A DNA stretch of 54,994 bases from Hyphochytrium catenoides (taxonomy: Eukaryota > Protista > Hyphochytriomycota), in contig FLMG01000291.1 in assembly GCA_900088475.1 (NCBI GenBank), positions 1 through 54,994 of the forward strand, read 5' to 3'. The position numbers and the translations under genes are program-made. Under the pieces are notes generated by a model. The model did no database searches. It was not told the origin of the DNA and saw only the letters and a list, made by a program, of their open reading frames with translations. Of this stretch, positions 33,187-54,994 are shown piece after piece. The stretch's first letter is position 1, and each line of letters opens with the position of its first letter.

Positions 33187-35137
33187 ATGGGATCGATAAG
33201 GGAAGAAGCAGATCCCAAGCAGCATTGTCGGCCCCAGAAGAGGCCGAAGAAGTCTTCATCATTGCCGCTACCAGCAGTGACTAACAATCTTGCCTCGCAG
33301 GGGCGGAGGAATGGTCAGAGGTCATCGTCGTCAACAGCTTTCACAGTCCTTACCAGCTCTGACCTTTTGGCCTACATCAGCGCACTCCAACGTGGCCGGA
33401 GGTACGCAGACTGGCACTCTGGCGATCAGGCTGCGGCCCGCGGTCATCTTAGCTTATTGAAATTGAAGAGGAGACAAGAGGAGGAACCTGCCCAGAGCGG
33501 TCCCGATGCTGAGAAATCATTGGATGGTAGAGGAGGCAAGCCAGTACCGCTTTTCTTCACTGCCAATGCCAAGAAATGGGCTATAAAGGCGCGCCANNNN
33601 NNNNNNNNNNNNNNNNNNNNNNNNNNNNNNNNNNNNNNNNNNNGAGCTAGCGGCGTCTTCCGGGCACCACGGCCTCGTTGCCTGGTTAGAAGCAGAGTAC
33701 CTCCACTTCAAGCCCAATTTGCAGACCATCATGGCTGCAGTCAGAAGTGGCGATGTGAACGTTCTCCGTTGGCTCTGTCAGCGCGCTGAGTCTTTCTCCA
33801 GTGACGAAGTACTACGGCTCATCAATCAGGCGATTGCATCGGATCAACTCAAAGCCTTGAAGTGGCTTGATGAGCGATATGGGCCTTACCCTCAGGGTGA
33901 TGTGCAGAGGCCCTTACTGACGGCAATAGTAAACTGTGTATCCGTGGACACCCTGAGGTGGGTCAGTGAACGCTACGGCCCGCGGCAGCTCTTCAAAGAT
34001 GAGGATGAGGAAGGAGATCTTATGACAGCCCTTGGATGTGTGGTCAGCCGCGGTAGCTTTCACGTCCTCTCTTGGCTCTTTGAACATGGTCGATACGGTT
34101 GTGTTGTGCGCAAGAAGCTGAAAGCCATCGTAGAGCTGGGGCTCTCGGAAGAAGTGCAGGAGATCTTAGACTGGGCAAAGGACGTCACAGGCGCACGATA
34201 TCCACTGCAAGATTCTGATCTTCACGAATGTACGCAGTCCTTCCTCTCAGAAGATGAGCTTCCAGAGAATCCGCTCCCTTTCTTGCAATGGTATCATAAG
34301 AGATGTCCCGAGCAGGCGCGGCAGTGGATTACCAATGATTTGATCTCTTCCGCATTAAGAGATAATGACTTAGAGCTCCTTGAGTGGCTGCATAGTCTCC
34401 AGGTAATGACAGATGAGAAGTTCTTCTCTAACTTCAGGCCTAGAGAACTATTGCGCAACCTCACAACGCCAAAGGGAGCAATGGTGCTGCGCTGGCTGCA
34501 TCGGGTCTGCCCACAGCGTCTTCAACGCACTAAACCTTCCAAGGATGACGCCACTCGGGCTGCTGGCAACTATAACAATCAGGAGCTGCTGCAGTGCATG
34601 GAGGATATTTGGGGAGGAGATGTGATGTCTTTGATTGACATTAGAAAGGCAATGCCATCGGCTGCTAGCCAATGGTCCGTGCGGCCTGTCCGCTATCTAC
34701 AGCAGCTTATGGACAGCGGTCGGATTACGCTTAAGAGACAATGCTCAACTGGTAGTGCTGCTGAGAGCACTATTGTCAGTGCTGCGAATCCTGGTGTAGT
34801 AGGATCATGTCAGCAAGAAGAAGGTGCGGATGATGCCTGGAAGAGAGTGGCCGTCATTAGAGCCACAAGATGCGGTGATGTACCAACGCTAGAATATCTA
34901 TGGCAAAGCAGTTACGACTTCAGTCGCGCGAGCAACGTTGCTTGCCGGCTGATTGCATACGGCTGCCTAGACCCTTCGGCCTTCCTTCTCTCCAAGTCGG
35001 TCACTGTGACAACTGTGGAGATGCTGAACACGGCAAAGCGGAAGAAGCAGTGGGACGCACTTTATTGGCTGGCCAAGACGGCGTCTCCGGCTGTCTATCA
35101 AAACTGGCTCTCTTCAATTTCTGGTGAGAGCCAGTAG
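33187..35137 (+). CDS. Intronless ankyrin-repeat-like protein, copy 1 (spans N gap 33597-33643)
   Basis: ORFs 33187 and 33719 join across the gap by colinearity with copy 2. Degenerate ANK-like helices: AAARGHLSLLK, AASSGHHGLVAWL, AVRSGDVNVLRWL, AIASDQLKALKWL, ALRDNDLELLEWL, ATRCGDVPTLEYL. Confidence 0.8.
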
Positions 35138-37633
35138 TACGTGCTAGACGATGGGCCTCCTCTCGGGCAGTTATTAGGAGGAGACGAGCATCTCTTCGAT
35201 GGGACTGCAGGGCAAAAGCGATAGATTGATTAACCCCAATGATGAGGGAGCAGCTCGTAGAGGGGCCAACGAGGAGATTATCATGGAGGATAAAGCTCTT
35301 CCTTCGACTAAGCTTTTCTTCTTGCTGGAGAGTCCATCAAGAAGGCCGGCAGGTGCAAACCAAGGACAGAGGATCTCAGCACTTACGGCTTCCTATGTGG
35401 AGAACGAAGGCAGCAGACCGTTACTCTCGTACACTTTGGTGTTGATCTACTATTGAGGGCAACGCCGCACTGATGGCGAGGACAAGGAGGAGTCGATGAG
35501 CTGCTGGCGTAGACACTACGAGCCCCAATTTCCCCAGGCTGTTGGAGCAGTCGCAGTCACCACGAGTTTCCCAGGTCCTACGAGCTCCTCAAAGAGCATT
35601 CCCTGGAGTTGATATGTTAGTCTTCTTCTGTCAGGATAGTGCTACTAGGAGCGCGGGAGCGGAGCGCCGTGGCGGTGGCGACTGTAGAGTTAGTTAGGGA
35701 CGGGGGACCTAGCGCGATCTTTATGTCTCTTGCTCGCCTAGTTCTCATTCCAGGCTGAGGTGACAATGGCTTCGTGAAGTGGGAAACAACCACGATCTCC
35801 TTCCTTTCTGTCTATGTATAATGTATCTATAAACCTGCTACCCGTGCTTTCTCATGCTTACCAGAGGTTGCTCATCGTATGATTGTCCCTCTTCGCTTGC
35901 CAGAGCGTCAAGCGGAAGATCTGCTTTCGATGGTTAGCTCCTCTGTTCTCTCATCTTCTCCATTACCAAGTCAGTCATCTTCTAGTATCCTAGAAAGAGC
36001 AAGGCGGTCTCCTATCATCTATCTTCACTCCATAGCATTGACAAATAGTCAGTGCTGACAACATGCTCCAGCTGACCCATCACTCGGAATAGGAGATGAT
36101 AATTTTCGCTTGGTTCAGGCAGCTCCGTAGTGCCAATTCCTTGTGTATGGATGGCTTCCACGGAGTGTCAAGCAGCTCTTTCTCCCCGCTATAGCTTCTG
36201 TTCCTTCCGTTCCCTAGCCCCGGGTCCATTGTAAAAAAAGCCGCTCCTTTGCCGGCATTCATAAGACGATTAGCACTCGACGTAAAGAAGAAAAAGCAGC
36301 GGCCTCAGGGACCAGGAAAGAAGCAATATGCTTTGGCGTGTCACAGATGCGTGCGCCTCGCTCGCTTGCCAGGGTGTTCGCTGGCTGGCTCTGTTGATTG
36401 TCAGCAAGCTTTCAACCTAGCGCTATTTTTTTAGTGGCACCTGCCATCTGCCATCGCCCACTATCAAGAAACTCGCTCCCATCACCCACTGCCTCAACCC
36501 CGTATCGTTGTTGTCTCACTCCTTCTCCTACCCTCAACTCCTCGATCCTTGCTTCTCCTGCTCTTCAGTTCTCACCAATGGCAGCAGCTTCCGGCCCTTC
36601 AGGACACTTGGCGCTCACATGCTCAGGAAGAGGAAAGAGAACGATGCAGTAGCAAAAGGAGACATAGTAGAGGAGAGAGAGGACATCGGAGTAACATGAT
36701 CTGTTAGAGGACAGCACAGGAGAGGAGGCGAATATCACGCAGCTCAGCTTTCTCCTGCTTCAATCACACGGAGTCACAGGCAATGGCGCCATTGCCTTGC
36801 TGCTGTCCTCATGCTACGCCGTAAGCGAACATGATATGCACGATTCAGATATACTCAGATTATAAGGAGCAGCGGGAGGCAGCTTTGCTACTAAGGCCAC
36901 TATCCTTCTCACCATCAACGAGCCCAAAAGCCTCGCCACACCATGAAGCACTCAAACTTCCTAATGCAGAACTTATCGGCCGCGCTCTGACGCAGATGAT
37001 GCAACCGGTAGCGCCACGACTCCTATCTCATCCAGCCCTTCAGTAGCCATAGGCGGTAGCAAGCATCAAGCTTAATCAGCGGCCGAGCTCTGCCAGCGCT
37101 GGCCCAGCTCTAAAGGAGTCTCTGTCTGTGCCTCAGACCAGCCAACAGCCATTCTAAAACAGAGACAGAGACTCCTGGTTCATCCAATCTCGGTTCTCCA
37201 TCCGGTCCCTTCGGTATTGATAATTATATTTGTATCTCTCACCATCATTGGTGTCTTCCAAAGTAAATCTCGGACCGTCTAAGCTTGTCTTCGGTCGGAA
37301 CTAACTGCTTTCGGATACACGATGAAGAGTGGCGGGAAGGGCGAAAACATTTTGAAGTGCATTGGCGGCGATCGCTGTTCCCTCCGCCTCTGTCTGTCGC
37401 CTTCGTATGTCGCCTTCGTCCTCTTCTGTCTATCTCACTCCGTTGTCCTCCCTTATTATCTCAACAGAACTTTGTCTTCCTGCCGTGAGAGCTGAGCACC
37501 GATAAGCAGACCTGCAGGAACGAGGAGCAAGGTTGTGCCACACGGACCAGGAGGAGTGATCCTCCTGTTTTCCTCCACGGTTCTTTCTTCCTTGTTCCCG
37601 CATGCCTCTTCTGTCTCGGGAGTGCTGAGAGTT

Positions 37634-39556
37634 ATGGGATCGATAAGGGAAGAAGAAGCAGAGACGGGACAGTATCGTCGGCCCCAGAAGAGGCCGAAGA
37701 AATCCTCATCATTGCGGCTACCAGTGACTAGCGCCATCGGCTCCCAGGGGCGGACGAATGGTCAGAGGTCATCATCAGCAGCAACATTCACAGTCCTAAC
37801 GAGCCCTGACCTCTTGCTCTACATCAGCGCATTGCAACGTGGCCGGAGGTACGCAGACTGGCACTCTGGCGATCAGGCTGCGGCTTGCGGTCATCTTAGC
37901 TTATTGAAATTGAAGAGGAGACAAGAGGAGGAAGCTGCCAAGAGCGNNNNNNNNNNNNNNNNNNNNNNNNNNNNNNNNNNNNNNNNNNNNNNNNNNNNNN
38001 NNCTGGAACACTATCGGCAATCATTGGAGAGCTCTGTCCCTGAGCTGTTTGAGCTAGCGGCGTCTTCCGGGAACCTCGGCCTCGTTACCTGGTTAGAAGC
38101 AGAGTATTTCCACTTCAGGCCTAACGTGCAGACCGTAGTGACTGCAGTCAGAAGTGGTGATGTGAACGTCGTCCGTTGGCTCTGTCAGCGCGCTGAGTCT
38201 TTCTCCAGTGAGGAAGTACTACGGCTCATCTATCAGGCGATTGCATCGGATGGACTCAAGGCTTTGAAGTGGCTGGATGAGCGATATAGGCCTTACCCTC
38301 ACGGTGACGTGCAGGCGCCTTTACTGACGGCAATTAGAAATGGTGTCTCCGTGGACACCCTGAGGTGGGTCAGTGAGCGCTACGGCCCGCGGGAGCTATT
38401 CAAGGATGAGGATGAAGAAGAAGACTTCATGGTAGCGCTTGAATGTGTAGCCGGCGGCGCTAGCTTTCACGTCCTCTCTTGGCTCATTGAGCATGGTCGA
38501 TACGGTCGTCTTGTGCGCAAGAAGCTGTATGCCATTGTAGAGCTGGGGCTCTCGGTAGGGGAGCCACAGATCGTAGATTGGGCAAGGGAAGCAGCAGGTA
38601 TATGCTTTCACCGGATGGATCTTGATATCCACGAATGTACGCTGGCGTTCCTCTCACAGGATCCAAATCCTACTAATCCGCTCCCGTACTTGCAGTGGTA
38701 CCACGAGAGATACCCTCAGCGTGCGCGGGAGTGGGCCACCAATGAGTTGATCTCTTCTGGACTAGAAGACGACAATGTAGAACTCCTTGAGTGGCTGTAT
38801 AGTCTCCAGGTAATGACAGACGAGGAGTTCTTCTCTAACTTCAGGCCTAGGGAACTATTGCACACCCTCTCATCACCATCGCCAACGGGACCAATGGTGC
38901 TGCGCTGGCTGCATCGGGTCCGCCCACAGCTCTTTCAAGGCATTAGACCTTCCAAAGAGGACGTCACTGGCGCTGCTAGCCAGCTTGATAATCAAGAGCT
39001 GCTGCAGTGCATGGAGGATATATGGGGAGCAGATGTGATGTCTTTGATTGACATTAGAAAGGCACTGCCATTAGCTGTTAGGCAAGGGTCCTTGCGACCT
39101 GTTCGCTATCTACAGCAGCTTATGGACAGCGGACGGATTCCGGCTCCATCATCTCCGACTATTGCTGCTGCTCCCGCTGGGAGCAACGTTGCCGGTGCCG
39201 AAGATGCTGGTCATATAGTAGAATCCAGTCAACAAGAAGAAGGAGCGGATGATGCCTGGAAGAAAGAGGCCGTCATCAAAGCCACACAATGTCCAGGCAT
39301 GCCAGCATTACATTTTTTATGGGAAAGCGGCTACGACATCACTTGCGCAAGCAAAAGAGCTATTTTGCAGGCGATTGAATCCGGCTGCCTAGACACTCCG
39401 GCCTTCCTTCTGTCCAAGTCGGCCGCTGTGACAACTGTGGAGATGCTCAACACGGCAAAGCGGAAGAAGCGTTGGGAGGCACTTTATTGGCTGGCCAAAA
39501 CGGCGTCTCCGGCGGTCTATCAAGGCTGGCTCTCTTCAATTTCTGGTGAGACCTAG
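37634..39556 (+). CDS. Intronless ankyrin-repeat-like protein, copy 2 (spans N gap 37947-38002)
   Basis: ATG 37634 (MGSIREEE) matches the copy 1 start; same repeats (AASSGNLGLVTWL, AVRSGDVNVVRWL) and the same C-terminus WLSSISGE. Confidence 0.8.
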   Translation: MGSIREEEAETGQYRRPQKRPKKSSSLRLPVTSAIGSQGRTNGQRSSSAATFTVLTSPDLLLYISALQRGRRYADWHSGDQAAACGHLSLLKLKRRQEEEAAKSXXXXXXXXXXXXXXXXXXXLEHYRQSLESSVPELFELAASSGNLGLVTWLEAEYFHFRPNVQTVVTAVRSGDVNVVRWLCQRAESFSSEEVLRLIYQAIASDGLKALKWLDERYRPYPHGDVQAPLLTAIRNGVSVDTLRWVSERYGPRELFKDEDEEEDFMVALECVAGGASFHVLSWLIEHGRYGRLVRKKLYAIVELGLSVGEPQIVDWAREAAGICFHRMDLDIHECTLAFLSQDPNPTNPLPYLQWYHERYPQRAREWATNELISSGLEDDNVELLEWLYSLQVMTDEEFFSNFRPRELLHTLSSPSPTGPMVLRWLHRVRPQLFQGIRPSKEDVTGAASQLDNQELLQCMEDIWGADVMSLIDIRKALPLAVRQGSLRPVRYLQQLMDSGRIPAPSSPTIAAAPAGSNVAGAEDAGHIVESSQQEEGADDAWKKEAVIKATQCPGMPALHFLWESGYDITCASKRAILQAIESGCLDTPAFLLSKSAAVTTVEMLNTAKRKKRWEALYWLAKTASPAVYQGWLSSISGET

Positions 39557-42253
39557 GGAATACGAGTACGTGGTGCTGGAAGATGGGCCCTCCTCCAGCA
39601 GTTGGGCAGATAGCATCTACTCAAGACGGTCATCCTCTTCGAAAGAACTGTTGGGCAACAATGGACTATTGATCAACCCCAATGAAGGAGCAGCTCGTCG
39701 TGGAAGGGGCAATGAGAAGATTACGTGAAAGGTAAAGTCTTCTCTCCATCAAGAAGGTCGGCAGGCACAAATTACTAAGGACAGAGGTTCTCAGAGACGG
39801 TTTCCCATGTGGAAGGACGAAGGCAGGTAGAGCGTGCTCCCTTCTCAAACGTCGGACGTATATACTTCGATGTTGAGCCTACTACTGTGGGTCAGGCGCT
39901 GATGGTTGGTGGCTAGGGCAACAAAGAAGAGCGGATGAGCTGGTGGCGCATACTACGAGCCCGTACTGTCTCTGACTGTGGGAGGAGCAGTTGAAGGCAT
40001 CACGAATGACCCAGGTCCTACTAGCTCCTCAAAAACCATTTCCTGGAGGCCTGGTGGTGGTATTAGCCTTCTTTTGTTCGAGTAATGTTGCTACCGAGCG
40101 CGGAGGGCCGTAGCGTTAAAGACAGCAGAGTTTTAGGGCCGGGGGAGCTAGCGCGATCTGAGCAGGAGGAGCTAGCGCCATCTGTATCTCTCTTTTTCCC
40201 CTTCTCCTCCTTCCAAGATTGAGGTGACAGCCGGTTGATGAGTGAGGAAGGACCACCTCCTATTCTGCCTATGTACATTCTGTCTATGTGTTAGGAATTA
40301 TGTTAAACCTGCTACTCGTGCTTTCTTATGCCGCCTACAGGAGGAGGCTGCCTTATTATGGTTGGCTCGTCTCCTTTCTCAAATCTTCTTCATCAGGTCA
40401 ATCAGCCATCTTCCACTATCATGGAGAGGGGCCAGGCGGTCTCCTATCATCTATCTCCACTCCATAGCATTGACAAATAATCGATGCTGACAAACATGCT
40501 GCAGCTGACCGATCACTAGGAATGAGAGCCGTCAACTTCACTTGTTTCAGGCAGTTCCGTATCGCCCATTCCTTGAGATTAGAGGGCGCACAGAGTGTCA
40601 CAAGAAGAACCGCTTCTTCCGAGCGTAGCTTCTTATTACATAGCAAGAAGGGTCAAGAGGGATATGAGTCAGAGGAGAAGCCCTTACTAAGAACAATAGT
40701 TCTATCAAGGAAGACACCTCATCAAGAAGAAGAGAAGCTCTTAGAGAACAATCCGCGTTTGTAGGCGCCATTTATATAAATGTATCCTTGGCTCACTTCA
40801 TCTCATGACAGCTTAGGCCCTGCCTTTGCTTGGTCCTACTACTACCAGGCCCGGGAGAACCTTAGAAATGGACAAAGGATGAAGCAAAGAAGGAGGAGGA
40901 AAAGAGAACGACGCTAAAAGGAGACGGTTTGCCGGGCAGGACGACGCGTCGGCGTGACACGATCTCTCCCACAGACACGATGGTAGCGATGATGTCTCCT
41001 TCTTCTCCCGCATCCATGTTACCATCGGCATCTGGTCCTGCTCGGGCGCTGACGCCCAGAAGCGTTTTGCGTAGAAGGGTAACACTACGGCTTATAACTT
41101 CATTTTATAAATGAAGGCAACATCAGGGAAACCACCTCGGCATCGATGAAGAAGATGTTGGACAGACGGATCTTGCACGATCTCTGTAACAACGCTCCTG
41201 ATGGCGTAGTGCCTCCTGCAGTGTCCTCTTGACTTCAAGAGCTGGGTGGAGACCAACCAGACAATAGCGGGCTCTCATTCTCGCTGTTGCAGCTTCTGTT
41301 CCTTGCCCTATGCTACTGGTCGATTAGGTTCAACAAGGAGATTGTCATAAGATGTTTGGCAATATTACGGTTCAGAACAAACAAGTCCAACATGCTGCGA
41401 TCCTGTTCTGCCTTGCTTAGAAGTTTATACATCATCACTCTCCACCTAGGAGGAGGTATGTTCCTGTCGATGTGTCACACAAATGGTGCATATGTGCAAT
41501 CTCCCTGCTCCGGACATCCGTCCACTGGCTCTGTCTTGTCAGCAGGCACCTTACTGCCCTGGCCTATTGCAAGGGCCTTTTGCGCCATTCACCACCTCAG
41601 CGTCGTATCGTCGTTGGTGTCATAATCGTTCTCCTACCCTCAACTCCTCGCCTTTTCCGTTCTCCTCCTCTTCAATCAGTTCCCAGCAATGGCAGCAGTT
41701 TGGGCAACTTCGGCATTTCAAGGACACACAGGGGAGAAGATTCTTCAACTAAATGGCTCATGGTTATAGCTTTAGCCTGGCAACAAAGAGGAGTGCTTCT
41801 AGAAGCTGTCCTTCTTCATAGATATCTCATATACACTGTCACCAACGACCATGTGGCGGATATTGCTGGATATCCTCCCATCGTCGCAACTCCGCCCCCC
41901 TTCATGTTGCTCCCACGCTGCTTGTCATCAGTGCCATTAAGCTGGCTCTCTGTAGCTCGAGCAATAGTAGTGGTGGTTCTGCTTGCAAGAGTATTACTGT
42001 TCCTATCTCTAATAGTAGGATCTCTTTATCACGTTGATCATCTCACCAGCCAGCAGCAGCGTCGACGGCCATCGGTGCCTGACGACGAAGATGATGATGG
42101 CACCACTTCCACTGATGATGTTTGACAGCCGAGCGAACAAGAGCTGCACTACAGAAGAAAGATCATGTAACGACCATGGAGGAGGGTGAAAGGGGACTAT
42201 GGAGGGCACAGGGTGAAGGAGGAGGAGGAGGAAGGAGGAAGGCACCATCAATC

Positions 42254-42513
42254 AAACGGGAATTTTTTACCCGTTTTATTCGGCCAAAATCACTTTTCCT
42301 GCCCACAGTAAGTCAATGACCGGCTTGGCTTTTTTATTTTATTTATAAATGCAAAGCAAAAAACTAGATAAAAACTCGCCAACTCTTTGATAGAGTTTGT
42401 CTATGGTTTTTATACTTTTAGCAAATTATATCCATAGTTTTATATAATAGTAATAAGAACTATGGATATTATAATGCAAGCCAGAGTAGCGACAGCCCAG
42501 TGTTTTACACTGT
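42254..42513. other. AT-rich island made of consecutive inverted repeats
   Basis: aaacggg..cccgttt; ataaaaac(42368)..aactct-ttgat-agagtt..gtttttat(42413); atatccatagtt(42428)..aactatggatat(42469); cagtgt-ttt-acactg. Confidence 0.6.
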
Positions 42514-44607
42514 CGAGCAGAGCCTAGATATCAAGGCAAGGAGAAAAAGGCAAATCTAAGAAGCTGTGGGACGGAGCTCCCTTGTCCCACCTTCAAGATC
42601 CAAACAAGAGAGAGAGAGAAAGAGATATACAGAAGAAACGAGACAGAGAAGGTGGTCCTGGGAGGGGTAACGTGTAATGTTCAAACGAGGAAGAGTAGTT
42701 TCCACCACACCAAATCTTCCTCTCTCCTCCCTCTCTCTCTCTCTCTCTCTCTGTTGCTCTCTCCTCTCTTCTCATGTTCATGTCTCTTTCTCTCTCTCTC
42801 GCTTGTTTCGCTCTAAAGGCTCATTCTGTCATCTCTAGGAAGTGCCTTAGCAGTCTATGATTGACCTGGACGCTCTCGTCTCCTGCTGCCGCATCTTCTT
42901 CTGGTGGGACGATGAGGGGATTGACGCTGCTACTTATTGGACATCAACGTAAGGCCCACAGAAGAAGGGAGGAGGGACAGCTTCACCACATCATCGCCCA
43001 TGGGAATGTGGGTCAGAACCTATACAGGAGAGTAGAAGAGGTACAAGAGCAGTGACAAGAAGGAAAAAGAGACTGATATCTTTTAGCAAAGACAGCCAAC
43101 GGCACAAGAAGAAGACAGGGCACCACCACGGCAGACAACCAAGCGTCAACTATCGAGTGGCCTAGGGTGGACAGCACAGCAAGAGGTGGTGAGAGCATCA
43201 TCAGCGACGCAGAGTGAGAAGATTGACTCTTGGACCTTGCACAACGAAGATGTGAAGACCGCCAGCTGGCGGTGGAGAGATCTAGCGTATCTTATGGCGG
43301 TGCAGCCCTCCATGGCAAGGGACGAGTGCGCTGGCCCTAAGATTCGGACGGTCGGCCTTGATTCTGTTTTTCTTATTCTTGCCCATGCTGGAATATTCAA
43401 AGAGGATAGAGTGATGGACGCCCCTGCTCTCGTTCTCTCTCTCTCTCTTTCTCGCTCTCTGCTGTCTCTTTCTCTCTCTCTCTCTCTTGCTCTGTGGCTC
43501 CTTCTCTCCTCTCTTCCCCCATCGCCATTGACTTGGACAACTGGAGCGCCATGATGAGAAGGAAGATTGGTATTTTCAGGTCTTTCCTGACAGATTTTTT
43601 CCACCTGATACGGAGCTCGCTGCACTGGCATCAAAACCGTTGATTCTAATTCAGAACCCTCTCTTTCTGCTCTCACCTTGTCCTTCTCTCCGTTTGGCTC
43701 GCCCGCCATCATTACGGGTGGGAATCAGTTAGGACCTCATCTTATTCTGAAGCTTTGTCAATGGCTTCAAAGCCTTTGAGGCGACCCATGGCACAGCGCT
43801 CGTCGGAGTTTTATCCTTTGTGGCCTACCAGCCACATTTCGTCCCATCATCACGTTATGAGAGCGTCACCCCAAGGCAACAAGAGAAAGAGATCAATAGA
43901 TGATGATAGAGAGCCTGCCCAAAGGGAAGAGGAACAAGATCTGGCACATATATATGTATTGAAGTGCAGAGAGGTTAAACAGGGTAACCGAACAGCAAGA
44001 GATGATGAGAGTTTGTGTCTCCTACAATGGACAAATAAACCAGCAGCAGCATGAAGCCACAAGCAATCCAGAAGCCGCAAGGTGAATAAGGCAGGCAGAT
44101 GAAGAAGGAGAGAGAGGGAAAGAGTGCACGAAGAGAGAAAGAAGATGGTGCGAAAACAGAGGAGGGTAGCTTCTGTCCTTTGGCCATTGAAGGCTCCAAA
44201 TATTAGAAAAGTAGTGACAGACCACTGACAAGTGACTTCAACAACAAAGACGATGAGGGCAGAACCTCCGAAAGATCGCGCCGGCCATCTCCTGTCATGT
44301 CGAATCCCCTAGGTGAGGAGTTAGGAAGAAGGGATAGGGAAGAGATAAGACGGGGGGAGAAAGAGAGATAGAGAAGAGCTGGAAGGAGCAAGATTTGAGA
44401 AGGCAGAGTAGTTGACAGCCTCTTCCTTGTTTTGAGATGGACGGCGCTTCTTGGACGGCACTTCTTGCTCGCTCGTTGTCCTTTCCCTCCGACTTTCACA
44501 AAGCAACTTTCCCAGTGCCAATCACTTCAGCCTAAGAACCACAAGAAGATCAGGTCCTCGTCCGCCCTTCTTTCAGAACCTCTCTTCCCCACACCTTCAA
44601 CATCAAC

Positions 44608-45228
44608 ATGAAGCTCTCTATCGCTGGACTTGCTGCCGCTCTCTTCGCCGTTGCTGGCGCTGCCGATGTCGCCTCCCCACCTCAGGACAAGATCACCGTG
44701 GACCTGGTGACCGTGAACGGCTCTGGATGCCCTCCTGGCTCTACAGCTGTCGCTGTAGCTCCTGACAACACGGCCTTCACCGTCACGTACAGCTCCTACA
44801 TGGCTTCTGCAGGCTATGGCACTCAGCCCACTGACTCCAGAAAGAACTGCCAGCTGGCAGTCCAGGTGCATGTTCCTCAGGGCTTCACCTACGCCGTTGC
44901 TAAGGCTGACTACAGAGGTTTTGCTAACCTTGCTGACGGCGCCAGCGGTTCTCAGCGCGCTTCTTACTACTTCCAGGGCATGTCTGAGACCACCCGCACC
45001 ACCCATCTCTTCAACGGCCCTATGGAAGACAACTGGCAGGTGACCGACGTAGCCGATGTGGCTGCTATCGTCTACCATCCTTGCGGCGCTAAGAGAAACC
45101 TTAACATCAACACTGAGGTTCGGGTGAACAAGGGCACCTCTAACGCTCAGTCCACCAGCTTCATCAACATGGACTCCACTGATGCCTCCATCAGCACTGT
45201 CTACCACTTCCACTGGAAGCGCTGTTAA
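44608..45228 (+). CDS. Secreted DUF4360-family protein, copy 1 (206 aa)
   Basis: Signal peptide MKLSIAGLAAALFAVAGA; motifs VNGSGCP, DNTAFTVTYS, RKNCQL, ADYRGFA, SYYFQG, NINTEVRV, MDSTD; terminal WKRC; four Cys; intronless with strong codon bias. Confidence 0.92.
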   Translation: MKLSIAGLAAALFAVAGAADVASPPQDKITVDLVTVNGSGCPPGSTAVAVAPDNTAFTVTYSSYMASAGYGTQPTDSRKNCQLAVQVHVPQGFTYAVAKADYRGFANLADGASGSQRASYYFQGMSETTRTTHLFNGPMEDNWQVTDVADVAAIVYHPCGAKRNLNINTEVRVNKGTSNAQSTSFINMDSTDASISTVYHFHWKRC

Positions 45229-45989
45229 GCTCATCGTCGCTCTCACAATGCAGGCTGTCCCTTACTCAGGCACTCGGTCTTTCTCCAAAGAGTGATATCG
45301 TCCAACGAAACGTAGGAGAGGGTCTGATGGCTTACTAGCGATGGTTCATATGAGACAGTAGAGAGAGAGCGCGATAGCCAGAGAGTAAATACCTTTTTCA
45401 AATTGATTATAATGAGAATCTTTGTGTCCGCTTTTCTACCTTGACGCCTTGCTTGCTTGGACGATTACCGCCACATTGCGTCAGACGTAAGCTGAAGGAA
45501 GCACCGACTCGTTGATCTTCTTTCGTTCATCACATGTTCCTCCCTCACAAGTTCGTCCTCATCAACACCTAATAAGAAACCTCTTTCGCATCTACAAAGA
45601 GCTATTGTTACAATGAGTGATGGCCTCAGGAAGGTAGGGCGGTACGACGTTTTAAGGGAAGAGTATCTGTTCAGCGAGATACAGGAGAAGCTGTTTGACC
45701 TCCTCCGATTCCCACATCCATCGATCACAGGTGACAGACCACCATCACATGTGACAAAGCGACAACATGGACGGCAGAAAAAGCAATCAACCAGTCAGTG
45801 GTAGATGCAAGAGTTGGACGGGTACTTTGATTTGGAAGCAAGAGGATCATACCACCAGCAGGATGTACAGCTCTTCTGAGATAGGTGTGCCACCGGCGCC
45901 ATCTGCCCTTTATATGTTCACAGGAGTATATGATGGATCTGGGGACGACCTTCTAAATGGACCAATCCGCCTTCGTCACCGTTGCAAAG

Positions 45990-46121
45990 TAGCTCTCGAG
46001 GAAAGGAGAAGGAGATCCCTACCTACCATCTCTCTCTCCCAGTACCGCTTGGACCATCAGAAGACTATCACAGCTGGGAACTAGCTCTCGAGGACAGAGA
46101 AGGAGATCCCTACTACCTATC
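45990..46121. repeat. ~40-bp direct repeat with 92-bp spacing
   Basis: tagctctcgagga..agaaggagatccctac..acc at 45990 and 46082. Confidence 0.75.
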
Positions 46122-49100
46122 AGTGGCAATGCATCTCTGCATGAGACCAAAGGCCCCACTATAATGATGGGTTCCTGTTGGTCGGAACCCAATCTGCGGG
46201 ACTTTCTAGGAGCAACAACTCATCTTTGACTAGTTCAACGGCGACCGATTGCGCTAGCAAAAGTTCCCCTTAGCGCGACGCTTCGAAAGCACTGAGCTTA
46301 GTTGTCTTATGGGTCCGTATGTATTATCTGTGGCTTAGTAAGGATGACTGTCGTTGAAGATGGAGGTTGGGCTTTGACCTTGAAGCAGTGGCGGCAATAA
46401 TGGGGCAGAGGTATCACTTGGAAAAGGCAGACCTCTCTTTAGGGATACTCGTAGGTGACAGTAATACCCTTTGCAGCGCTCTACAAGTTCACATGTGTCT
46501 CCTTAATACTGCACGTGTGGCCTTGGACTACCTGGGCTGTCATCATGGGGTCACAATGCTAATACTTTTCGATAGGGAGGAAGAGTCAATCACAATAGGC
46601 GGCGCATCTCTCGTATGTAGGCAGGCGGGCTTCTCCCACAACTTCTTGGGAGCACTGCAAAGAGCAACGTGCCCAGCGATTCAGCCCTCATGGTACCCTC
46701 CTCCAGGTGGCTTCATCCAATGCTCCAACGTCAACCTGCCTCACCTACCTTTCTGAGCAACTATGATGGGGAGATGGGTGGTAGAGGAAGAATAGAGGTT
46801 ATACTCTTCGAACCAGATGCTTCCCTCTTTGCTACTGCTTTTCATGAGGACCAATGATGATAGAACCAAAGGAAAGCAGGACCGACCACTATCGATCTGG
46901 GCTGACCTAAGATGATGAGAACTAGTGGTAACCTGCATGGTCTTCTAATTCTGCCTAACTCAGGTTATCCTTTGCTACGGATCTTTGACTCTCATCAATC
47001 TTGTCTCTGTTGCCCCTGCTCATGACTCACGATGCGTGATTTCTTCTCCTCCTCTTCAATTATATGTTGACCATGGTGCCTCAGGTCAAGACGCACGGTT
47101 TTCTTTCTCCCCCTTTTCTTGCTGACCTTTGCAGCGAGCGTTGTTCAGCAGGTTAAAACGTTGGCCCCAATTAGGTTCTTACCGAAGAAGTGGTTTAGCA
47201 TTGCTTACTCCTCGCTAGGCTACGTTTCTGTATGCCATCACCACCTCTCTTCTTCTGGTGCCTCCTTCTCCTTCATCTTCTTCATATCTTCAACATAAAA
47301 AGGACGACACATTTTTACAAAGAGCGAGACAGAGGAACAGTAAGAAGCTGCTCATCAAACCATTGGGTCATCTTTCGGTCAGAAGAAGAACAGAGAAGAA
47401 GGAGCGGCGGGCCGGCAGCGACGTAGTTCTATAAACGTCTTGTCCTTGTTTGCATGGAGGACGGCATGGTGGTGCACTACTTACTACTACTGCCTATCAT
47501 CCACCACCCATCGTGACGACGATGATCATGGTGGTGGCGGGCTCTGGCTAATAATCTCCCCGTTGTAGTGCCTCCTTTCCCCCTCCTCCTTCTTCCCTCT
47601 TCTTCTCAGATGATGGGCTGACCTAAATGTTCTTCCCGCTCGGCATCGACGAAGCCGCAGCAGTAGAGGAGGTCAGGCAGCACGGCCAACAGTACTTCTC
47701 CGCTTTGTGTTACTACTGTGTGTGTGTGACTACAGCTGATGGTTGGGCTGGCGCTGTTGATGACTAGAAGAAAGCCCTACTCGTACTACTGTACTACTAT
47801 TGTAGTAGCTCTATGGATATTTGCAGGCCGTGCGTGGCCTATGATCCCTATGGCTATGGCTTATGATAGATCTTATTAGAACTATCAGAACAATTTTCTT
47901 TCTGAATAACTGACAGGACATCATCAGAACCTTTTTAAACTTGAAGATGACTGGGTAGGTCTCCTTCTGGGGACCCACCGGTTTCTCAGGTTTGATAGCT
48001 AGCATAAATTCTCCCATGGTCCGGGCAACAAGTTGTCCTGTCTTTTCTTGTAGGCGAGACAGGGCTTGTGGGTCCACCTACATTACTGCTGGCCACAAAA
48101 TGCCGAAGCTGTTCTGAAAAGGAACCCAAATTTATTTCAAGTTCTAGACGGGTAGGGCTTGCAGAGAAGAGGAGCTATACTCGCTTGTTATTATACTGGC
48201 GAGTTCTAGCATTTGTAGTAGTGTTGAAATTTCCTTGATCCTTCATAGTGTACACAACAGGATTTTGCTGGGTTATTTTACCGTTTGCTCGAGGTAATAA
48301 GGAGTATAATGAATGGGCAAATTAGAACTTTTATTACGTAGATTGATTACTGTATGGAGTATAATGAATAATAAGGAGTACATTTTTTAGGTGAAAAGTT
48401 TGTTGCTGCTACATTCTTTGGTAATAATAAGAATGTACGTTTAGAACTTAGTCCCTTGACTACTCTAATTTGGTAAGAGCAACCTGGTCTTATTATTGGT
48501 GCTTGTTATTCTGGGCAACAGAACCCGATCTTTGGACATTCCCAGAGTCCTAAGGTTTCGCTGTTTCTGTTTGTCCCATCTGCCTCTTCCCTCGTTCTCA
48601 GCGTCTGCAATCTTTCCCGTACTTCATTGGAAGCTCAATCAACATTCAACAGCAGGCATTAGACAGGGCACTGCTGCTGGTCAGTGTCAGAGCATAAGAT
48701 GTTAGCCTTTCACAGGTCTGCGCGGATTTCTTGAGTATAAAAATAAAGACTACAAGCAGCCGCTGTAGGAGTCTAGAGAGTCAAGAGACGTTCTTAGATA
48801 TCAGAAGGCAAAGGGAAGATAGTCCTACCTAGTCCCTGAGGCTGTGCCTGGGGGGCAACGAAGTAGTAAAAGGACCAAAAGATGAAGGGCCAGTGCACTT
48901 CCTGCTCCTTCCGATCATCCCACTTCTAATTAGTATGAGTTTCTTTTTACTGGAGAGTTTGTCAGTCTTTCCCCCTCTTCTTCTCTTTCCTCCGCTGCAT
49001 TGTATCCCCCTCCTCTCCCCATCATCGTTTTCTTTGGCCTAAAGTTATGACTGCCGCGTCACTTCGCTGTTTATCCTACTCGAGGTTCTACCACATCACT

Positions 49101-49595
49101 TCGTGCTGCTCATGCAACGCTCCTTATCCTCCCACGTCTCCCGCTCTTTTCTTTGTCTTCTTGGCCCCTTCACAGCGACGGCAAGCAGTCGTCCATGTTA
49201 GCACCGACAATATCTTTTACGTTCAACCATAAAAAAGGAGAGTAGCAGAGGATAAATTGGATGTTGAAAGTTCTGCTAGGCAGGCAACAGCCCAGGCAAC
49301 ATCTTGCTTCCAGGATCCTCACCTTCTTAGCTAGCAACCCCTCGCTAACGTACCGCATCAACTGCTCCCAAGCACCATTTCCTCTCAAAGCTGCTCTTTT
49401 TCCTTACTCCATTGGTGTTTAGCTAAGACTTTCTTCCCTTTATCAACTCGTCTCCTCTCCTTCCCTTCTGTTAGAGGGCCGCCTTTCTAGAGAAGTCGCA
49501 GCTCCTCCTCAGCAACCTCACTATCAATCTTTCTCGCATCCTGAGACCCAGAACAAAGCCACCAGGAGCATCACAGCAAACGTGCTAGACAAAAC

Positions 49596-50210
49596 ATGAA
49601 GTTCTCTCTTGCCGGTCTTCTTCTCGCTGCCGCGGCCCTTGTTGGAAGCGCTCAAGCTGTCCCTCCCCCAAAGGACAAGATCACCATTGATGTCGTCACT
49701 CTGAACGGCTCTGGGTGTCCTCCTGGCTCTGCTGCCGTGGCCGTCGCTCCTGACAACACGGCATTCACCGTCACCTATAGCTCCTACCTCGCCTCGGCAG
49801 GCTATGGCACGAAGCCCACGGACGGAAGGAAGAACTGCCAGCTGAACCTCCGTGTAAATGTCCCAGGTGGATTCACATTCGCCATTGCCAGCGCTGACTA
49901 CAGAGGCTTCGCCTCCCTCGCTGCTGGCGCCACAGGCTTACACCAGGCTTCCTACTACTTCCAGGGCAACTCTTTGACCACCTCCAGCTCTAAGACCTTC
50001 AAGGGCCCCATGGAGGACAACTGGCAAGTGACTGACGACTCTGATGTCGCTATCTACGCCCCATGCAAGGAGAAGCGCCTGTTTAACATCAACACTGAGC
50101 TGCGTGTCAGCAAGGGCACGTCCAGTCCTCAGAGCACCAGTTACATGGCTGTGGATTCCGCTGATGGCTCAATCACCACGAAGTACAACTTCTCTTGGCA
50201 GAAGTGTTGA
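49596..50210 (+). CDS. Secreted DUF4360-family protein, copy 2 (204 aa)
   Basis: Signal peptide MKFSLAGLLLAAAALVGSAQA and the same motifs as copy 1; intronless. Confidence 0.92.
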   Translation: MKFSLAGLLLAAAALVGSAQAVPPPKDKITIDVVTLNGSGCPPGSAAVAVAPDNTAFTVTYSSYLASAGYGTKPTDGRKNCQLNLRVNVPGGFTFAIASADYRGFASLAAGATGLHQASYYFQGNSLTTSSSKTFKGPMEDNWQVTDDSDVAIYAPCKEKRLFNINTELRVSKGTSSPQSTSYMAVDSADGSITTKYNFSWQKC

Positions 50211-51696
50211 AGTCGTTTCTCACCTCTAGGGAATACGAAGGTTGAAGCGTGACAGCGGCATGAGTGGTGCAAGGAGCCAGCTTAAGTGTTTCTCCTAGGG
50301 GCTTATTTCTAGCAAAGGGTTGTTGCTGCGCAGCAACCATAGAGCGCAAAGACGGTATTGCGGTTGTTGAACGCCATAGGGAGGGAGGCAGGGAAGAGAG
50401 CGAAAGGAAAAGGTCTTCTGAGGTTCAAGCAAGGTTGTGCGTGTAGACGTAGGATGCAGCGGCACGTAGTAGTGGTGACTCTCCCACGCACCGTACGATA
50501 TAAGCAACACAAGGACATATTTTATAAATACGTAGAATAGTTAAGGTGTAAAGGACAACTAATGGACAGTAAGCGGTTGATGAGCCACAAGAAAAGGCAG
50601 CAGGAGTATCCTTTTTCTCTTCGAAGGGCGAAGAGGCCGTCAGTGATGGAAAACAGCACTCGATATTGCTCTTCTTTCTTCCGATCATCCCCACTGTCAT
50701 CCTGTTGTCGACATCTTGTCTTCCTCTTGTCATAAGCAGTGGAGTAGAGCGCTCTACCTTGTTAGAGCTGATCGCCTCACTACCAGAAGTCAGCAATGCT
50801 TCTTGGTCCACTCATAACTTTTTGGTCATTGTTGCTGACGCTTTCTCTCCGTGAGATTACTGCTTCTAGGAGGAACCACCATCAACATGGCAAACACAGA
50901 GCAAGAGAGAGACAAGGAAAAGAGAGAAGAGAGAGAGAAGCGGTATTACGAGGAGAAAGAGGACCGAGCAAAACAAAGAAGGATAACAAGAGAGAGAGAG
51001 AGAGAGTTTTTGAGAAATGAGAAGAGAAAAAAGCAGACCTATTCTTCTCAAAGTTTTTGCTTATCTGAGTGGTGTACGTGCAAACCTAAGAATGAGACGA
51101 GCTCGTCATCATCATCATCAACTCCCCAACCTCTCTCTCACTGTATGAAGGCTTCTAGTTCCACCTCATGCACCAAGGCGCGGCGGCCGTACAAGTACCA
51201 TCAATAATGAAGAAAAGAGTGGACCTGACCGGTAATGCCCAAAAAATAAGAATTATGCAAGCCGCTTCCAGCAGCAGGAGCTTCAAAAGATGAGACTTTT
51301 GCCGTGTAGTAACGACCACTCTGCTGTTGTCTCGGCGTAGTAAGAGTAAACCCTTCTTGAAAGCAGAGATAGCGAGCCCTTTCTTGTCATGTTTGCTTTT
51401 AATACCGCCCTTCGCAACGTTCATCAATTTTCGCGAAAATTAAGGAGGGGCTACGGCGGGTTGCGGAGCTAACCCTTGATGATCTGCAAGAGAATCGCTC
51501 CCACTGCAGTGTCGGAAGCGTTGTTGGTCTGAACCACAAAAGATTGTTGCTCAGAATCCGGCGGCGGGTTGATGATAGCTCCCGGAGCAGAAGCTACTAG
51601 AGCTTCTTCATTTAGTGCAGCACGCTCTTGCTCTGCCTGAGCAGTTTATCGGCCTCCTTCATTAGTCCGTCAAAGGCGCCGAGATCTTGGCGAACC

Positions 51697-52511
51697 CAAT
51701 CTCGTATTGTTGACGATAAGCTGATCCCGTGGTGGGAATGGCCAAGTGGCTTTCTGTTATTGAGTTGATGAAGTCTGGCTACTACTATTGTCAAATAAGA
51801 ATCAACAATGATGAGGACGGTGATGAACACAACGAGACAGCTTTCACGACTCGGTATAGCGTTTACGAGTGGAAGGTACTACCCTTTGGGCCGAGCGGTG
51901 CTTCATTTACCACGTTCATTCATTTATGAGGTTGATGCAACAAGAGGTGCTCCCCCCTTACTTGGATAATAAGTTGGTTGTGATGATAGTCTTCAGGATC
52001 AGCTCTGTATGCTCAGGCCTATCAAGCTGCTGAACGCGCAAGCCGCTCTACTCGTCGACAGTTAACATTCCACTCCAAAGACCTAGTCTGGCTCAAGGCC
52101 GAGGTATCGTGAACCCCGACTGTGGTGATGGAAAACGTACCTATCTACCTCGTCGGCCTGGTACTCTTTCCGGCATCCAGAAGAAGATTGGTAATAATGA
52201 TGATGCCGACTACACCTGGCATTGCCCAGGGCTTATCCGCTCCACCCAGTCGTTCACGTCTCCTTGCTGGAGAATTATCACCTTCCCCTGATGAACCTAT
52301 TCATAGACGCAAGCAACAAGAAGCAACCTCAGCCGATTCCTTTTGTAGGTCCTCTCGGCGGTGATGATCTACATTATTATCAGCTCGAAAAGATATTGAA
52401 GAGAAGATAGAGACTTGAGACTACCACCGTCCTCGGCGCCAATATGTCGCCACATGGCTCGTCGGATACCCTCTCTTTGATGCTACGTGGGAAACAGAGT
52501 CAAATTTTATG
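51697..52511 (+). mobile_element. Decayed, internally deleted Ty3/Gypsy chromovirus pol (RT N-part, integrase C-terminus, chromodomain)
   Basis: RT: RIVDD..AKWLSVIELMKSGYYYCQIRI..TAFTTRYSVYEWKVLPFG. Integrase tail: DLVWLK..LHPVVHVSLLENY. Chromodomain: YYQLEKILKRR..QYVATWLVGYPLFDATWETESNF. Stops and frameshifts throughout. Confidence 0.88.
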
Positions 52512-52673
52512 TCCGATGGTGAAGCAGCCCCACGCAGCTTCTTCTAAACACCGTCAACACTTGGCTCTTCTCTAACTTCGTAGCCACTGGACCTGATGTT
52601 GATGGAACCTGCTGGTGGCTTGACTAGTACTTTGCGCTCTACTTTTCTTGCCGCGGATGGCAACAGGCGCGGC

Positions 52674-53365
52674 AGGAGGGGAGCATGTAACATCTTCTCC
52701 TTCTATTCATCGATGCGTTGAAAAGAATGTTTCCTGAACAAGCCAAAGGATCACGTCCGTTATGATGAGGAGCGGCAGTCCACACCCGATACGCTCAATG
52801 ACACTCTTTTTGCACTGTGTAGCTGATAGTAGTAGTCTAGATCTTGCAGGGTCTGCATAGTAAAGGGATGAGCGAAGACAGAGTTCCCCCGCTGTAATCT
52901 GTAACCTCACGTCACGTTTTCCAGACTATCTGCACTTTGGCTAGTGCGCTACAGTGTCTTTTCCTAGGCTTCCTCTGTGCCTACGCTTAGCGTACGATGA
53001 GAGACCGACAGGTGTCAGGAAGTTGTACCACCACCGGCAGGTTCTGGACGCTACATAGAATCTCTGGGAAGATGAGTCTCCTGTCTCTTCTCTCTTTTTA
53101 TCTCTCCTCTCGCTCTCGCCATTCTCTGTCCTGCTCACTCTTTCTCGTCGCCCGCATTTACTCCCTCTCTTTCTCTTCCTCTCTTCTCTCTGTCCCTCGT
53201 CTCTCTGTCTCTCCTCTCTCTGTGTAGGTTTGCCATGACTTTGAAGGTGTTTCCCTCTAGAAGCAGTGATGTCACCAAGAGAGCGCGAGCACCAATAATC
53301 AAGTACTTATTACGGACCAAGAAGCATCACGACCTCTGGTGACGTGCACGGCGGTTCGCCTTACA
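52674..53365 (+). mobile_element. Polypurine tract and putative 3' LTR (TGTAA 52686 ... TTACA 53365)
   Basis: aggagggggag directly precedes tgtaaca, ~170 bp after the chromodomain. The right end is inferred only from a TTACA inverted terminus, and no second LTR was found. Confidence 0.5.
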
Positions 53366-53853
53366 ATAGCGCGGACATGCATAAATAGCAGTCGCCAGTG
53401 AGCTAGCCCTCTTCACGGGTCCTCAGCCTGGCGATCAGCTCTAGCAACCAAGAAGGAAGAGCGTACCTCTCCACTGTGGACAACAGGAAGAAGATAAAGC
53501 GTCCAGCAGGACAGGATGGCAGTGGGAGATGATCGGAAGAAAGAAGAGGGATAGTAGAGGAGCATCCACCACTGACGGCGTCTCCTCCACTTCTAATAAG
53601 AACAAGAGCACTACTCCTGTCTTTTCTTTTAACTCGACCAACCAGTTACTGTCCAATATTAGTTGTCCTTATTAGCCATGGTTCCTACTCTTCTTACAAT
53701 TGTTTTGCTTGCGGCGGAACTATGGTACGGTTTGACTCCCACTGCTATGTGGCGCTGCAACCTACATCTACACGACAAAGCTTTGTTGAACGGCAAGCAA
53801 CCTCCATGTGTCTGTCTCATGCTTCAACCTTCGTCGTCCCTATGAGGTGAAGG

Positions 53854-54468
53854 CTAACACTTCTGCCAAGAGAAGTTGTACTTGGTAGCGAATGAGCCAT
53901 CAGTGGAGTCCACAGCCATGTAACTGGTACTCTGCGGGCTAGACGTGCCCTTCTTCACGCGCAGCTCAGTGTTGATGTTAAACAGGCGCTTCTCCTTGCA
54001 AGGGGCGTAGATAGCGACACCTGCCTCGTCAGTCACTTGCCAGTTGTCCTCCATGGGGCCCTTGAAGGTCTTAGAGCTCGGAGTGGTCAGAGAGTTGCCC
54101 TGGAAGTAGTAGGAAGCCTGGTGTAAACCTGTGGCGCCAGCAGCGAGGGAGGCAAACCCTCTGTAGTCAGCGCTGGCAATGGCGAATGTGAATCCGCTTG
54201 GGACATTTACACGGAGGTTCAGCTGGCAGTTCTTCCTTCCATCGGTGAGCTTCGTGCCATAGCCTGCCGAGGCGAGGTAGGAGCTATAGGTGACGGTGAA
54301 TGCCGTGTTGTCAGGAGCGACCGCCACGGCAGCAGAGCCAGGAGGGCATCCAGAGCCGTTCAGAGTGACGACATCAATGGTGATATTGCCTTGGGGTGGA
54401 GCGATCTCCTGAGCGCTTCCAACTAGAGCCGCAGCGGCGAGGAGAAGACCGGCAAGAGAGAACTTCAT
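53854..54468 (-). CDS. Secreted DUF4360-family protein, copy 3 (204 aa), inverted relative to copy 2
   Basis: 16 of 204 aa differ from copy 2 by manual count. Shares the 5' leader catcacagcaaacgtgctagacaaa.catg and the 3' block cacctc.taggga..acgaaggttgaagc. Confidence 0.92.
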   Translation of the reverse strand: MKFSLAGLLLAAAALVGSAQEIAPPQGNITIDVVTLNGSGCPPGSAAVAVAPDNTAFTVTYSSYLASAGYGTKLTDGRKNCQLNLRVNVPSGFTFAIASADYRGFASLAAGATGLHQASYYFQGNSLTTPSSKTFKGPMEDNWQVTDEAGVAIYAPCKEKRLFNINTELRVKKGTSSPQSTSYMAVDSTDGSFATKYNFSWQKC

Positions 54469-54994
54469 GGTTTGTCTAGCACGTTTGCTGTGATGAGGCT
54501 TCTGTTGAGTTTGGACCTGGGTCTCCGGATGCTGGAAAGATCAATAATGAGGTTTCTGGGGACGCCCGACGCGAAATTCAGTGGTGGTGGGGTTTCCAAC
54601 GACAGGCGGCCATATAGCAAGACGAGTGAATGGAGAGGAGGAAGTAGAAGGAAGTGAAGGTCGTGCTGTAGACGATAGAGAGATAAGGAGAAGCAAGGGC
54701 GGAGAAGAGGAGCTCTCACAAGGTGGTAGGCAGTTGATGCGGTGGTGCCCTGCACTAGCGACCGACGAATGGATGATAGGAACGTGACAAGCTGTTGCCC
54801 CAATCGTCAAGATTCCATCGTCTTCTATCCTCCTTTCCTTTCTGGCCGTGTCCCTAAAGATACTGTCGGGTCTAGGATGGACGGCTGCTGGTGGTGCTGT
54901 CGATGTACGGCAGACCAAAAAGACCAGGAGGCAGTAGGAGAAAGAGAAAAGGACCGAGGGAGATAAGAACCGTTGAATGATGAGCCGCCGCGCG

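Follow-up and report, generated by a model that had tools for sequence, protein, structure and literature searches.

How does a eukaryotic scaffold come to carry intron-free genes whose predicted products resemble secreted proteins of actinomycetes? We addressed this question in contig FLMG01000291.1 of Hyphochytrium catenoides (assembly GCA_900088475.1), a free-living saprotroph, taking the whole 54,994-nucleotide stretch, read on its forward strand, as the window. It contains three genes of the DUF4360 family, referred to here as A, B and C, for which the initial annotation had proposed horizontal transfer from a bacterium followed by local expansion. Our analysis indicates that these genes very probably do descend from a bacterial gene that entered the Hyphochytrium lineage, most likely once, after which it would have ameliorated, duplicated and remained under constraint while continuing to encode a secreted, Bd1399-like product. 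The features on which this account rests are listed below, with stop codons included in the gene coordinates.

44608–45228, forward strand: DUF4360 gene A, 206 amino acids; nearest paralogue on scaffold C573 (81% amino-acid identity)
44608–44667, forward strand: signal-peptide-like N-terminus of gene A, MK followed by 17 uncharged hydrophobic residues, with a predicted local distance difference test (pLDDT) score below 50; genes B and C share the layout at their own 5′ ends
49596–50210, forward strand: DUF4360 gene B, 204 amino acids
53854–54468, reverse strand: DUF4360 gene C, 204 amino acids; convergent with gene B and 92% identical to it in amino-acid sequence
49569–50208, forward strand: arm 1 of an inverted duplication, comprising the gene B coding region and the 27 nt upstream of it; complementary to arm 2 at 92%
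53856–54495, reverse strand: arm 2 of the inverted duplication, the gene C coding region plus 27 nt upstream
38003–54994, no strand: gap-free stretch linking genes A, B and C to an ankyrin-repeat open reading frame (ORF; 38003–39556) and to non-coding DNA of about 48–51% GC

All three ORFs are intact and match the DUF4360 profile PF14273 from end to end (positions 1–178 of 178), with E values of 5e-70 to 2.6e-66 and scores of 223–235 bits against a curated cut-off of 27 bits. Each domain contains exactly four cysteines, the last of which forms the C-terminus, and each N-terminus is signal-peptide-like by a rule-based call (MK plus an uncharged hydrophobic run). Because the proteins are colinear with their bacterial homologues without interruption from the signal peptide to the last residue, the coding regions contain no introns. 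The genes thus agree with their first description as intact, intronless ORFs of 204–206 codons for four-cysteine proteins with signal peptides. The motifs NGSGCP, DNWQ and MDSTD, which had suggested an actinomycete affinity, are present in the window proteins and common to actinomycete proteins.

The family extends well beyond this window. A six-frame search of the genome returned ten open DUF4360 frames on seven scaffolds, none with an internal stop: three on the window scaffold, two on C777 and one each on C4245, C4, C573, C1394 and C161. All score 221–235 bits against PF14273, begin with MK followed by an uncharged hydrophobic run of 11–21 residues, and have exactly four cysteines in the domain, the last of them terminal in all but two. 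Protein identity among the ten ranges from 55 to 99%. The C1394 and C161 copies, which lie on 3.6-kb scaffolds, are 99% identical with a synonymous divergence (dS) of 0.09 and may be alleles, so that the genome holds nine or ten distinct loci. Genes B and C are convergent and make up an inverted pair with 92% identity across 640 nt; gapped similarity extends into the flanks on either side. Gene A, an older member, has its nearest relative on another scaffold, and C777 carries a second, older pair. Local expansion is therefore real, as proposed, but it accompanies an expansion across the genome.

Could the genes be bacterial contamination, or the product of a chimeric scaffold? The assembly is built from short reads, the window scaffold contains four N-gaps, and gene C lies 526 bp from the scaffold end. 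The last N-run, however, stops at position 38002, so the 17 kb from 38003 to 54994, with all three genes, are free of gaps. Coverage was assessed in three DNA runs, all of one study and representing two samples; as these are Logan contigs, depth is coarse. The runs cover 44350–50300 throughout, with a depth of 480–680 over gene A and 290–830 (mostly 380–580) over the spacers; a rise to twice that depth or more is confined to gene B, some paralogues of which are nearly identical to it. The same runs yield alternative contigs with indels at about half depth, the pattern of a heterozygous diploid nucleus, and the H. catenoides nucleus is diploid (PMC5795050). At 47555–47631, within the spacer that divides gene A from gene B, one haplotype in two of the runs replaces 75 bases with 35 others, an indel polymorphism.

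Composition and start context point the same way. The ten genes have a GC content of 50–58% and the flanks at all ten loci 48–52%, compared with means of 66% for the coding regions and 70% for the loci of 79 bacterial homologues. An A occupies position −3 in all ten copies, and a Shine–Dalgarno sequence precedes none. The surrounding genome is intron-rich, as its multi-exon HSP70 genes show, its genes having a published mean of 3.64 introns each, and published contamination screens of the assembly found nothing of note (PMC5795050). That the genome is of H. catenoides, or of something indistinguishable from it, is borne out by a rhodopsin exon ORF on scaffold C3799, which matches the solved channelrhodopsin HcCCR (8GI9/8IFU) with 456 bits along 195 residues and is less close to HcKCR1 and HcKCR2. 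Given the gap-free linkage, GC content, depth, haplotypes and start context, together with the spread of the ten copies over seven scaffolds, contamination or a chimeric join is very unlikely, to the point of being barely credible. The initial argument against simple contamination is thereby strengthened, and the read coverage across 44350–50300 and the unbroken sequence to 54994 show no sign of the mis-join between 44 and 55 kb that it had named as a concern.

The closest relatives of these nuclear genes are bacterial. A protein search of 5.8 billion clusters gave 2478 hits; among the best 120, from which named relatives were taken, all named ones are Actinomycetota at 59–69% identity (Allokutzneria, Lentzea, Streptomyces, Kitasatospora, Amycolatopsis, Micromonospora, Nocardia and similar genera), the rest are unnamed metagenome contigs, and none is eukaryotic. 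One unnamed top hit lies on a contig of 72% GC packed with bacterial genes. Likewise, in GTDB, represented by one genome per species, at least 554 loci match, and the best 80 all belong to Actinomycetota of the orders Pseudonocardiales, Kitasatosporales, Micromonosporales and Streptosporangiales. Overall, the actinomycete relatives are 58–69% identical along the whole length. The gene is sparsely distributed, occurring in 6 of 301 evenly sampled Actinomycetota genomes, all six of 7–10 Mb. It is also found on seven megaplasmids of Streptomyces, Kitasatospora and Streptantibioticus (0.7–2.8 Mb; e.g. NC_016113.1, NZ_CP109366.1 and NZ_CP108248.1). Beyond Actinomycetota, plasmids of Rhizobiales carry distant DUF4360 genes (31–35% identity), and matches occur on Nostoc plasmids as well. 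A viral vector was considered and set aside, as IMG/VR and the GenBank phages contain no relative.

A wider view of the family comes from 1.84 billion cluster representatives, searched exhaustively with HMMER, of which 3813 are members. Names were sought for 20 of them, including the following (identities are to the query).

P0124, P0216 and P0229: Actinomadura, Streptomyces and Catenuloplanes (Actinomycetota), 42–56%
P0223: Spizellomyces punctatus, a chytrid, 42%
P0121, two domains: Quaeritorhiza haematococci, a chytrid, 39%
P0269 and P0278: Hymenoscyphus (Ascomycota), 38% (P0269)
P0123, two domains: Chara braunii, a charophyte alga, 37%
P0125: Pseudobacteriovorax (Bdellovibrionota), 36%

These eukaryotic members raise a second alternative, namely that the Hyphochytrium genes were inherited vertically within eukaryotes or acquired from fungi. 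Fungi are the usual gene donors to pseudofungi, DUF4360 is common in fungi, and neighbouring genes in the window encode the fungal-style DUF4246 domain. A language-model feature search also ranked Ascomycota DUF4360 clusters first; this ranking confirms the family only and is silent on origin. Against this alternative, the named ascomycete, chytrid and Chara proteins are only 35–39% identical to the query (P0223, 42%), compared with 58–69% for the actinomycetes. In a 72-row maximum-likelihood tree (IQ-TREE, LG+C20+F+G4), moreover, a branch of about 1.5 substitutions per site with support of 100/99 divides the Hyphochytrium copies and Actinomycetota from the type found in fungi, chytrids, Chara and Bdellovibrionota, and its support is 100/100 in an 86-row tree. 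No copy of the fungal type was found in the six-frame search of the H. catenoides genome. We therefore regard membership of the actinomycete-type subfamily as firm on phylogenetic grounds, in line with the original assignment of the genes to the actinomycete rather than the fungal type, and give vertical or fungal descent very little chance. Placement in a broad, vertically inherited eukaryotic clade, which would have pointed to such descent, was not what the trees returned.

Two aspects of this wider family deserve mention in their own right. The two-domain proteins P0121 (508 amino acids) and P0123 (535 amino acids) cluster with single-domain ascomycete and chytrid proteins and with that of Pseudobacteriovorax, and the "eukaryotic" DUF4360 branch may itself carry an inter-domain history. 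In addition, one contig of 68% GC from an uncultured bacterium (ENA contig_5812_np1212; L096:3134–7470) bears five DUF4360 genes head-to-tail, and related metagenome contigs bear two or three each; tandem amplification of DUF4360 thus occurs in bacteria too. This bacterial clade lies within Actinomycetota in the 86-row tree, at the end of a long stem.

Residence in the eukaryotic genome has left its mark on the coding sequences. The GC content of third codon positions (GC3) is 0.51–0.70 in the Hyphochytrium copies, compared with a mean of 0.93 in the 79 bacterial homologues, which bears out the amelioration suggested at first sight. The reported preference for codons ending in C or T is equally evident in the counts, third positions of genes A, B and C comprising C at 0.44–0.49, T at 0.24–0.27, G at 0.18–0.23 and A at 0.06–0.09. 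In seven of the ten copies, A makes up 0.06–0.09 and C 0.42–0.49 of third positions. The corresponding fractions are 0.08–0.16 and 0.33–0.40 in the host HSP70 and tubulin genes, and 0.18–0.28 and 0.24–0.31 in the other ORFs of the window. A codon bias at or beyond the level of HSP70 and tubulin is an indirect sign, consistent with selection for efficient translation, and is the basis for the possible high expression suggested at first. The ratio of nonsynonymous to synonymous divergence (dN/dS) is 0.08–0.29 in every paralogue pair tested, while dS ranges from 0.09–0.25 in recent pairs to saturation (above 1.5) in old ones. The family has therefore long been duplicating under constraint.

Structure prediction with AlphaFold2 gave a jelly-roll model with a mean pLDDT of 87 that is all-beta past the disordered signal peptide. 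Its best match in the PDB, where a sequence search had returned only a chance match (E 0.83), is Bd1399 from Bdellovibrio bacteriovorus (8OKH; Z 12.6, root-mean-square deviation 3.1 Å over 156 residues). After it come generic jelly rolls (virus capsids, carbohydrate-binding modules (CBMs) and proteins resembling tumour necrosis factor) with Z of at most 8.6. Comparison with CBM4/16/27/61-like structures likewise gave generic jelly-roll similarity within the background range (Foldseek TM 0.2–0.37, Z at most 7.9). The cysteines at positions 41, 81, 159 and 206 of gene A are invariant in the Hyphochytrium copies, the actinomycetes and the distant branch. In Bd1399, one disulfide joins the N-terminal loop to a strand and the other a late loop to the C-terminus (PMC10792529); the cysteine spacing here is as described for that protein and suggests the pairs Cys41–Cys81 and Cys159–Cys206.

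Conservation extends beyond the cysteines. All ten copies retain the family-invariant residues GSGC, D53, FT, G69, R78-K79-x-C81-Q82, P90-x-G92, Y102-R103-G104, Y120-Y121-F122-Q123-G124, D147, P158-C159, N166, D189-S190-x-D192, W203 and C206, and a conserved charged and aromatic set of this kind suggests a specific site for binding or catalysis. Gene neighbourhoods provide no functional clue, since the largest common neighbour family reaches only 8 of the 79 actinomycete loci. Separately, NGSGC contains an N-x-S sequon beside the first predicted disulfide cysteine (44716–44724, 49704–49712 and the matching codons of gene C). The sequon is kept in all ten Hyphochytrium copies, while the eukaryote-type branch mostly has G in place of N, and its asparagine could be glycosylated in the eukaryotic secretory pathway.

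We next consider where within the actinomycete-type subfamily the copies fall, which bears on both the direction and the number of transfers. FastTree on 238 rows unites the ten copies in a single clade; its sister group is a trio of Streptomyces sequences (support 95), and both lie within an actinomycete clade of 99 tips. A quick tree also makes them monophyletic and nested within Actinomycetota. Dayhoff-6 recoding of the 86-row alignment gives the same result, with the monophyletic copies (64) deeply nested and sister to Micromonospora sp. CPCC 205371 plus an Actinophytocola metagenome-assembled genome (78).

Several observations weigh against a simple transfer into Hyphochytrium. The free 72-row LG+C20 search draws the copies as a basal grade rather than a nested clade and, with a distant outgroup, site-heterogeneous 20-state trees root at or among them. 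The paralogues are as divergent from one another (55–70% identity) as from the bacterial proteins. Apart from Bd1399, the structure finds only generic matches. Finally, the single possible RNA run (X4, filed under another organism label and containing 6% of the words) gave nothing at 44350–50300.

The basal or sister placement is itself weakly supported, with ultrafast bootstrap (UFBoot) values of 2–70 and 82/84 for the branch of named Actinomycetota, and addition of an uncultured high-GC bacterial clade (86 rows) gave the same picture, with UFBoot again at 2–70 on the critical branches. In approximately unbiased (AU) tests on the 72 rows, a tree constrained to one Hyphochytrium clade was 3.3 log-likelihood units better (p 0.54), and a tree with the copies and the Streptomyces trio nested in Actinomycetota was not rejected (p 0.315). 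The added clade (P0200; uncultured bacteria, 68% GC) was tried as a nearer outgroup; denser sampling nests it inside Actinomycetota on a long stem, and it therefore provides no root. Compositional attraction was likewise considered as a cause of the basal placement and is a weak explanation, the GARP and FYMINK amino-acid fractions differing by at most 0.03. Whether the copies are nested within the sampled Actinomycetota or sister to them is thus model-dependent, the LG+C20 trees disagreeing with the FastTree, quick and Dayhoff-6 trees and the AU tests rejecting neither position. Of the initial proposal, the actinomycete affinity, the integration, the amelioration and the duplication stand.

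This ambiguity leaves some room for transfer in the reverse direction, in which the subfamily would be native to a hyphochytrid-like eukaryote and would have been acquired by an ancestor of mycelial actinomycetes, then spread on megaplasmids. Such a history would suit the outgroup-rooted LG+C20 trees, which root at or within the Hyphochytrium copies and set the named Actinomycetota apart by a branch, the more so as composition is a weak excuse, and it would suit the presence of the gene in only 6 of 301 actinomycete genomes. The branches concerned, however, are those with UFBoot of 2–70, monophyly of the copies is at least as likely, and the Dayhoff-6, FastTree and quick trees nest them in Actinomycetota. 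Transfer from bacterium to eukaryote is further favoured because the subfamily is broad in Actinomycetota (at least four orders and at least 554 loci), because no other eukaryote appears among the best hits from 5.8 billion clusters, and because ten intronless copies sit in a genome with multi-exon HSP70 genes and the intron density given above. We accordingly judge the reverse direction improbable.

Several independent transfers from different actinomycetes would account for paralogues that are only 55–70% identical and for the lack of a single Hyphochytrium clade in unconstrained C20 trees. We consider this unlikely, as the one-clade constraint does at least as well in the AU test, three other analyses (FastTree, quick and recoded) recover monophyly, no copy has a supported specific bacterial sister, and the recent duplicates and inverted pairs show active duplication. 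A single origin for the ten copies is thus favoured by the trees. Since the paralogues have diverged as far from each other as from bacterial proteins, the transfer would be old and its donor lineage is not nameable.

Taken together, these data suggest the following course for the favoured transfer from bacterium to Hyphochytrium. A mycelial-actinomycete-type DUF4360 gene, already equipped with its own Sec-type signal peptide, would have entered the nuclear genome of the H. catenoides lineage, most likely once, and then taken on the composition and codon usage of its host. Duplication, which in part gave local pairs like that of genes B and C, would have produced about ten intron-free copies, all held under purifying selection. 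Guided by the N-terminal signal peptide that it has kept, the product would enter the endoplasmic reticulum, adopt a Bd1399-like jelly-roll beta-sandwich fold with two disulfides, and be released extracellularly. Because all family-invariant polar and aromatic residues are retained, what these copies do outside the cell is most likely the molecular act that their actinomycete counterparts perform there. Our best guess is that they bind or act on an extracellular polymer of the substrate or cell wall during osmotrophic, surface-attached growth.

The neighbouring genes in the window include eukaryotic-style DUF4246 and ankyrin ORFs; two tandem DUF4246 ORFs (21071–22828 and 29642–31594), each matching only the C-terminal part of that domain (profile positions about 239–398), lie upstream of the ankyrin-repeat ORFs 33719–35137 and 37535–39556. 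A Gypsy relic mentioned in the initial annotation was not located, and the 20 ORFs scanned contain no reverse transcriptase or integrase Pfam domain; an Rfam search of the window gave no match. Microsatellite-like GA/CT purine/pyrimidine-rich tracts flank several DUF4360 copies (50899–50938 and 53174–53213 in the window, and the flanks of the C4 copy), and on scaffold C4 a long (CT)n run stands immediately 5′ of the start codon.

The Hyphochytrium proteins most closely resemble DUF4360 proteins of mycelial Actinomycetota such as Allokutzneria oryzae, Lentzea spp., Micromonospora sp. CPCC 205371 and Streptomyces celluloflavus. They share 58–69% identity with these, including the signal peptide layout, and are alike in length, in the four cysteines and in the invariant motifs, with hardly any indels. 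They differ in their eukaryotic host, their lower GC3, their eukaryote-like start and flanks, and their copy number, which is ten in Hyphochytrium but one or two in three actinomycete genomes checked. Bd1399, the only solved DUF4360-like structure, is likewise an elongated jelly-roll beta-sandwich, although it is only 9–11% identical in sequence, invisible to sequence search and on a different branch of the family.

Fungi provide a second comparison. Secreted fungal DUF4360 proteins include VdSCP27 of Verticillium dahliae (PMC7170778), PnSsp1 of Parastagonospora nodorum (bioRxiv 10.64898/2026.09.14.751338) and mycorrhiza-induced small secreted proteins (PMC10949477). Like the Hyphochytrium proteins, they have about 200 amino acids and four cysteines and come from filamentous osmotrophs; they are induced in host colonisation or development and are in some cases reported to cause necrosis in plants (same sources). 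The fungal subfamily is nevertheless separate, as Hymenoscyphus, Spizellomyces and Quaeritorhiza fall with Chara in the other clade, a comparison that did not include the VdSCP27 and PnSsp1 sequences themselves.

As an event, the closest parallels are the documented transfers from prokaryotes to oomycetes and their secretomes (McCarthy & Fitzpatrick 2016, PMC5023847; Misner et al. 2014, PMC4316629; Savory et al. 2015, PMC4447370), in which a bacterial gene for an extracellular protein was likewise fixed in a fungus-like stramenopile. Here, the recipient is a hyphochytrid and the protein family another one, DUF4360 being absent from the text of those papers. A full-text literature search for DUF4360 found no stramenopile paper, and a search combining Hyphochytrium, Streptomyces and "horizontal" found none either. 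DUF4360 is not mentioned in the accessible portions of the Hyphochytrium genome paper (PMC5795050) and its supplements, nor in those of the supplements of a 2026 study of osmotrophy and gene transfer. Ours is apparently an unreported example of a well-known kind of event, the transfer of a secreted protein from a bacterium to an osmotroph.

Pseudofungi cannot phagocytose, and both the routes by which they gain foreign genes and the genes that they keep are debated. To this debate our analysis adds a clean case, a multi-copy, selectively maintained and secretion-ready bacterial gene in the only sequenced hyphochytrid. The case fits the over-representation of actinomycete-like sequences in gene clusters linked to osmotrophy (PMC13345962). 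It also shows that DUF4360 exists in eukaryotes in at least two unrelated forms, a fungal, chytrid and Chara type, the fungal members of which include candidate plant effectors, and an actinomycete type. Recruitment of the same extracellular module may therefore have happened repeatedly among osmotrophs that are filamentous or attached to surfaces, and Hyphochytrium offers a tractable second eukaryotic context in which to study DUF4360 function.

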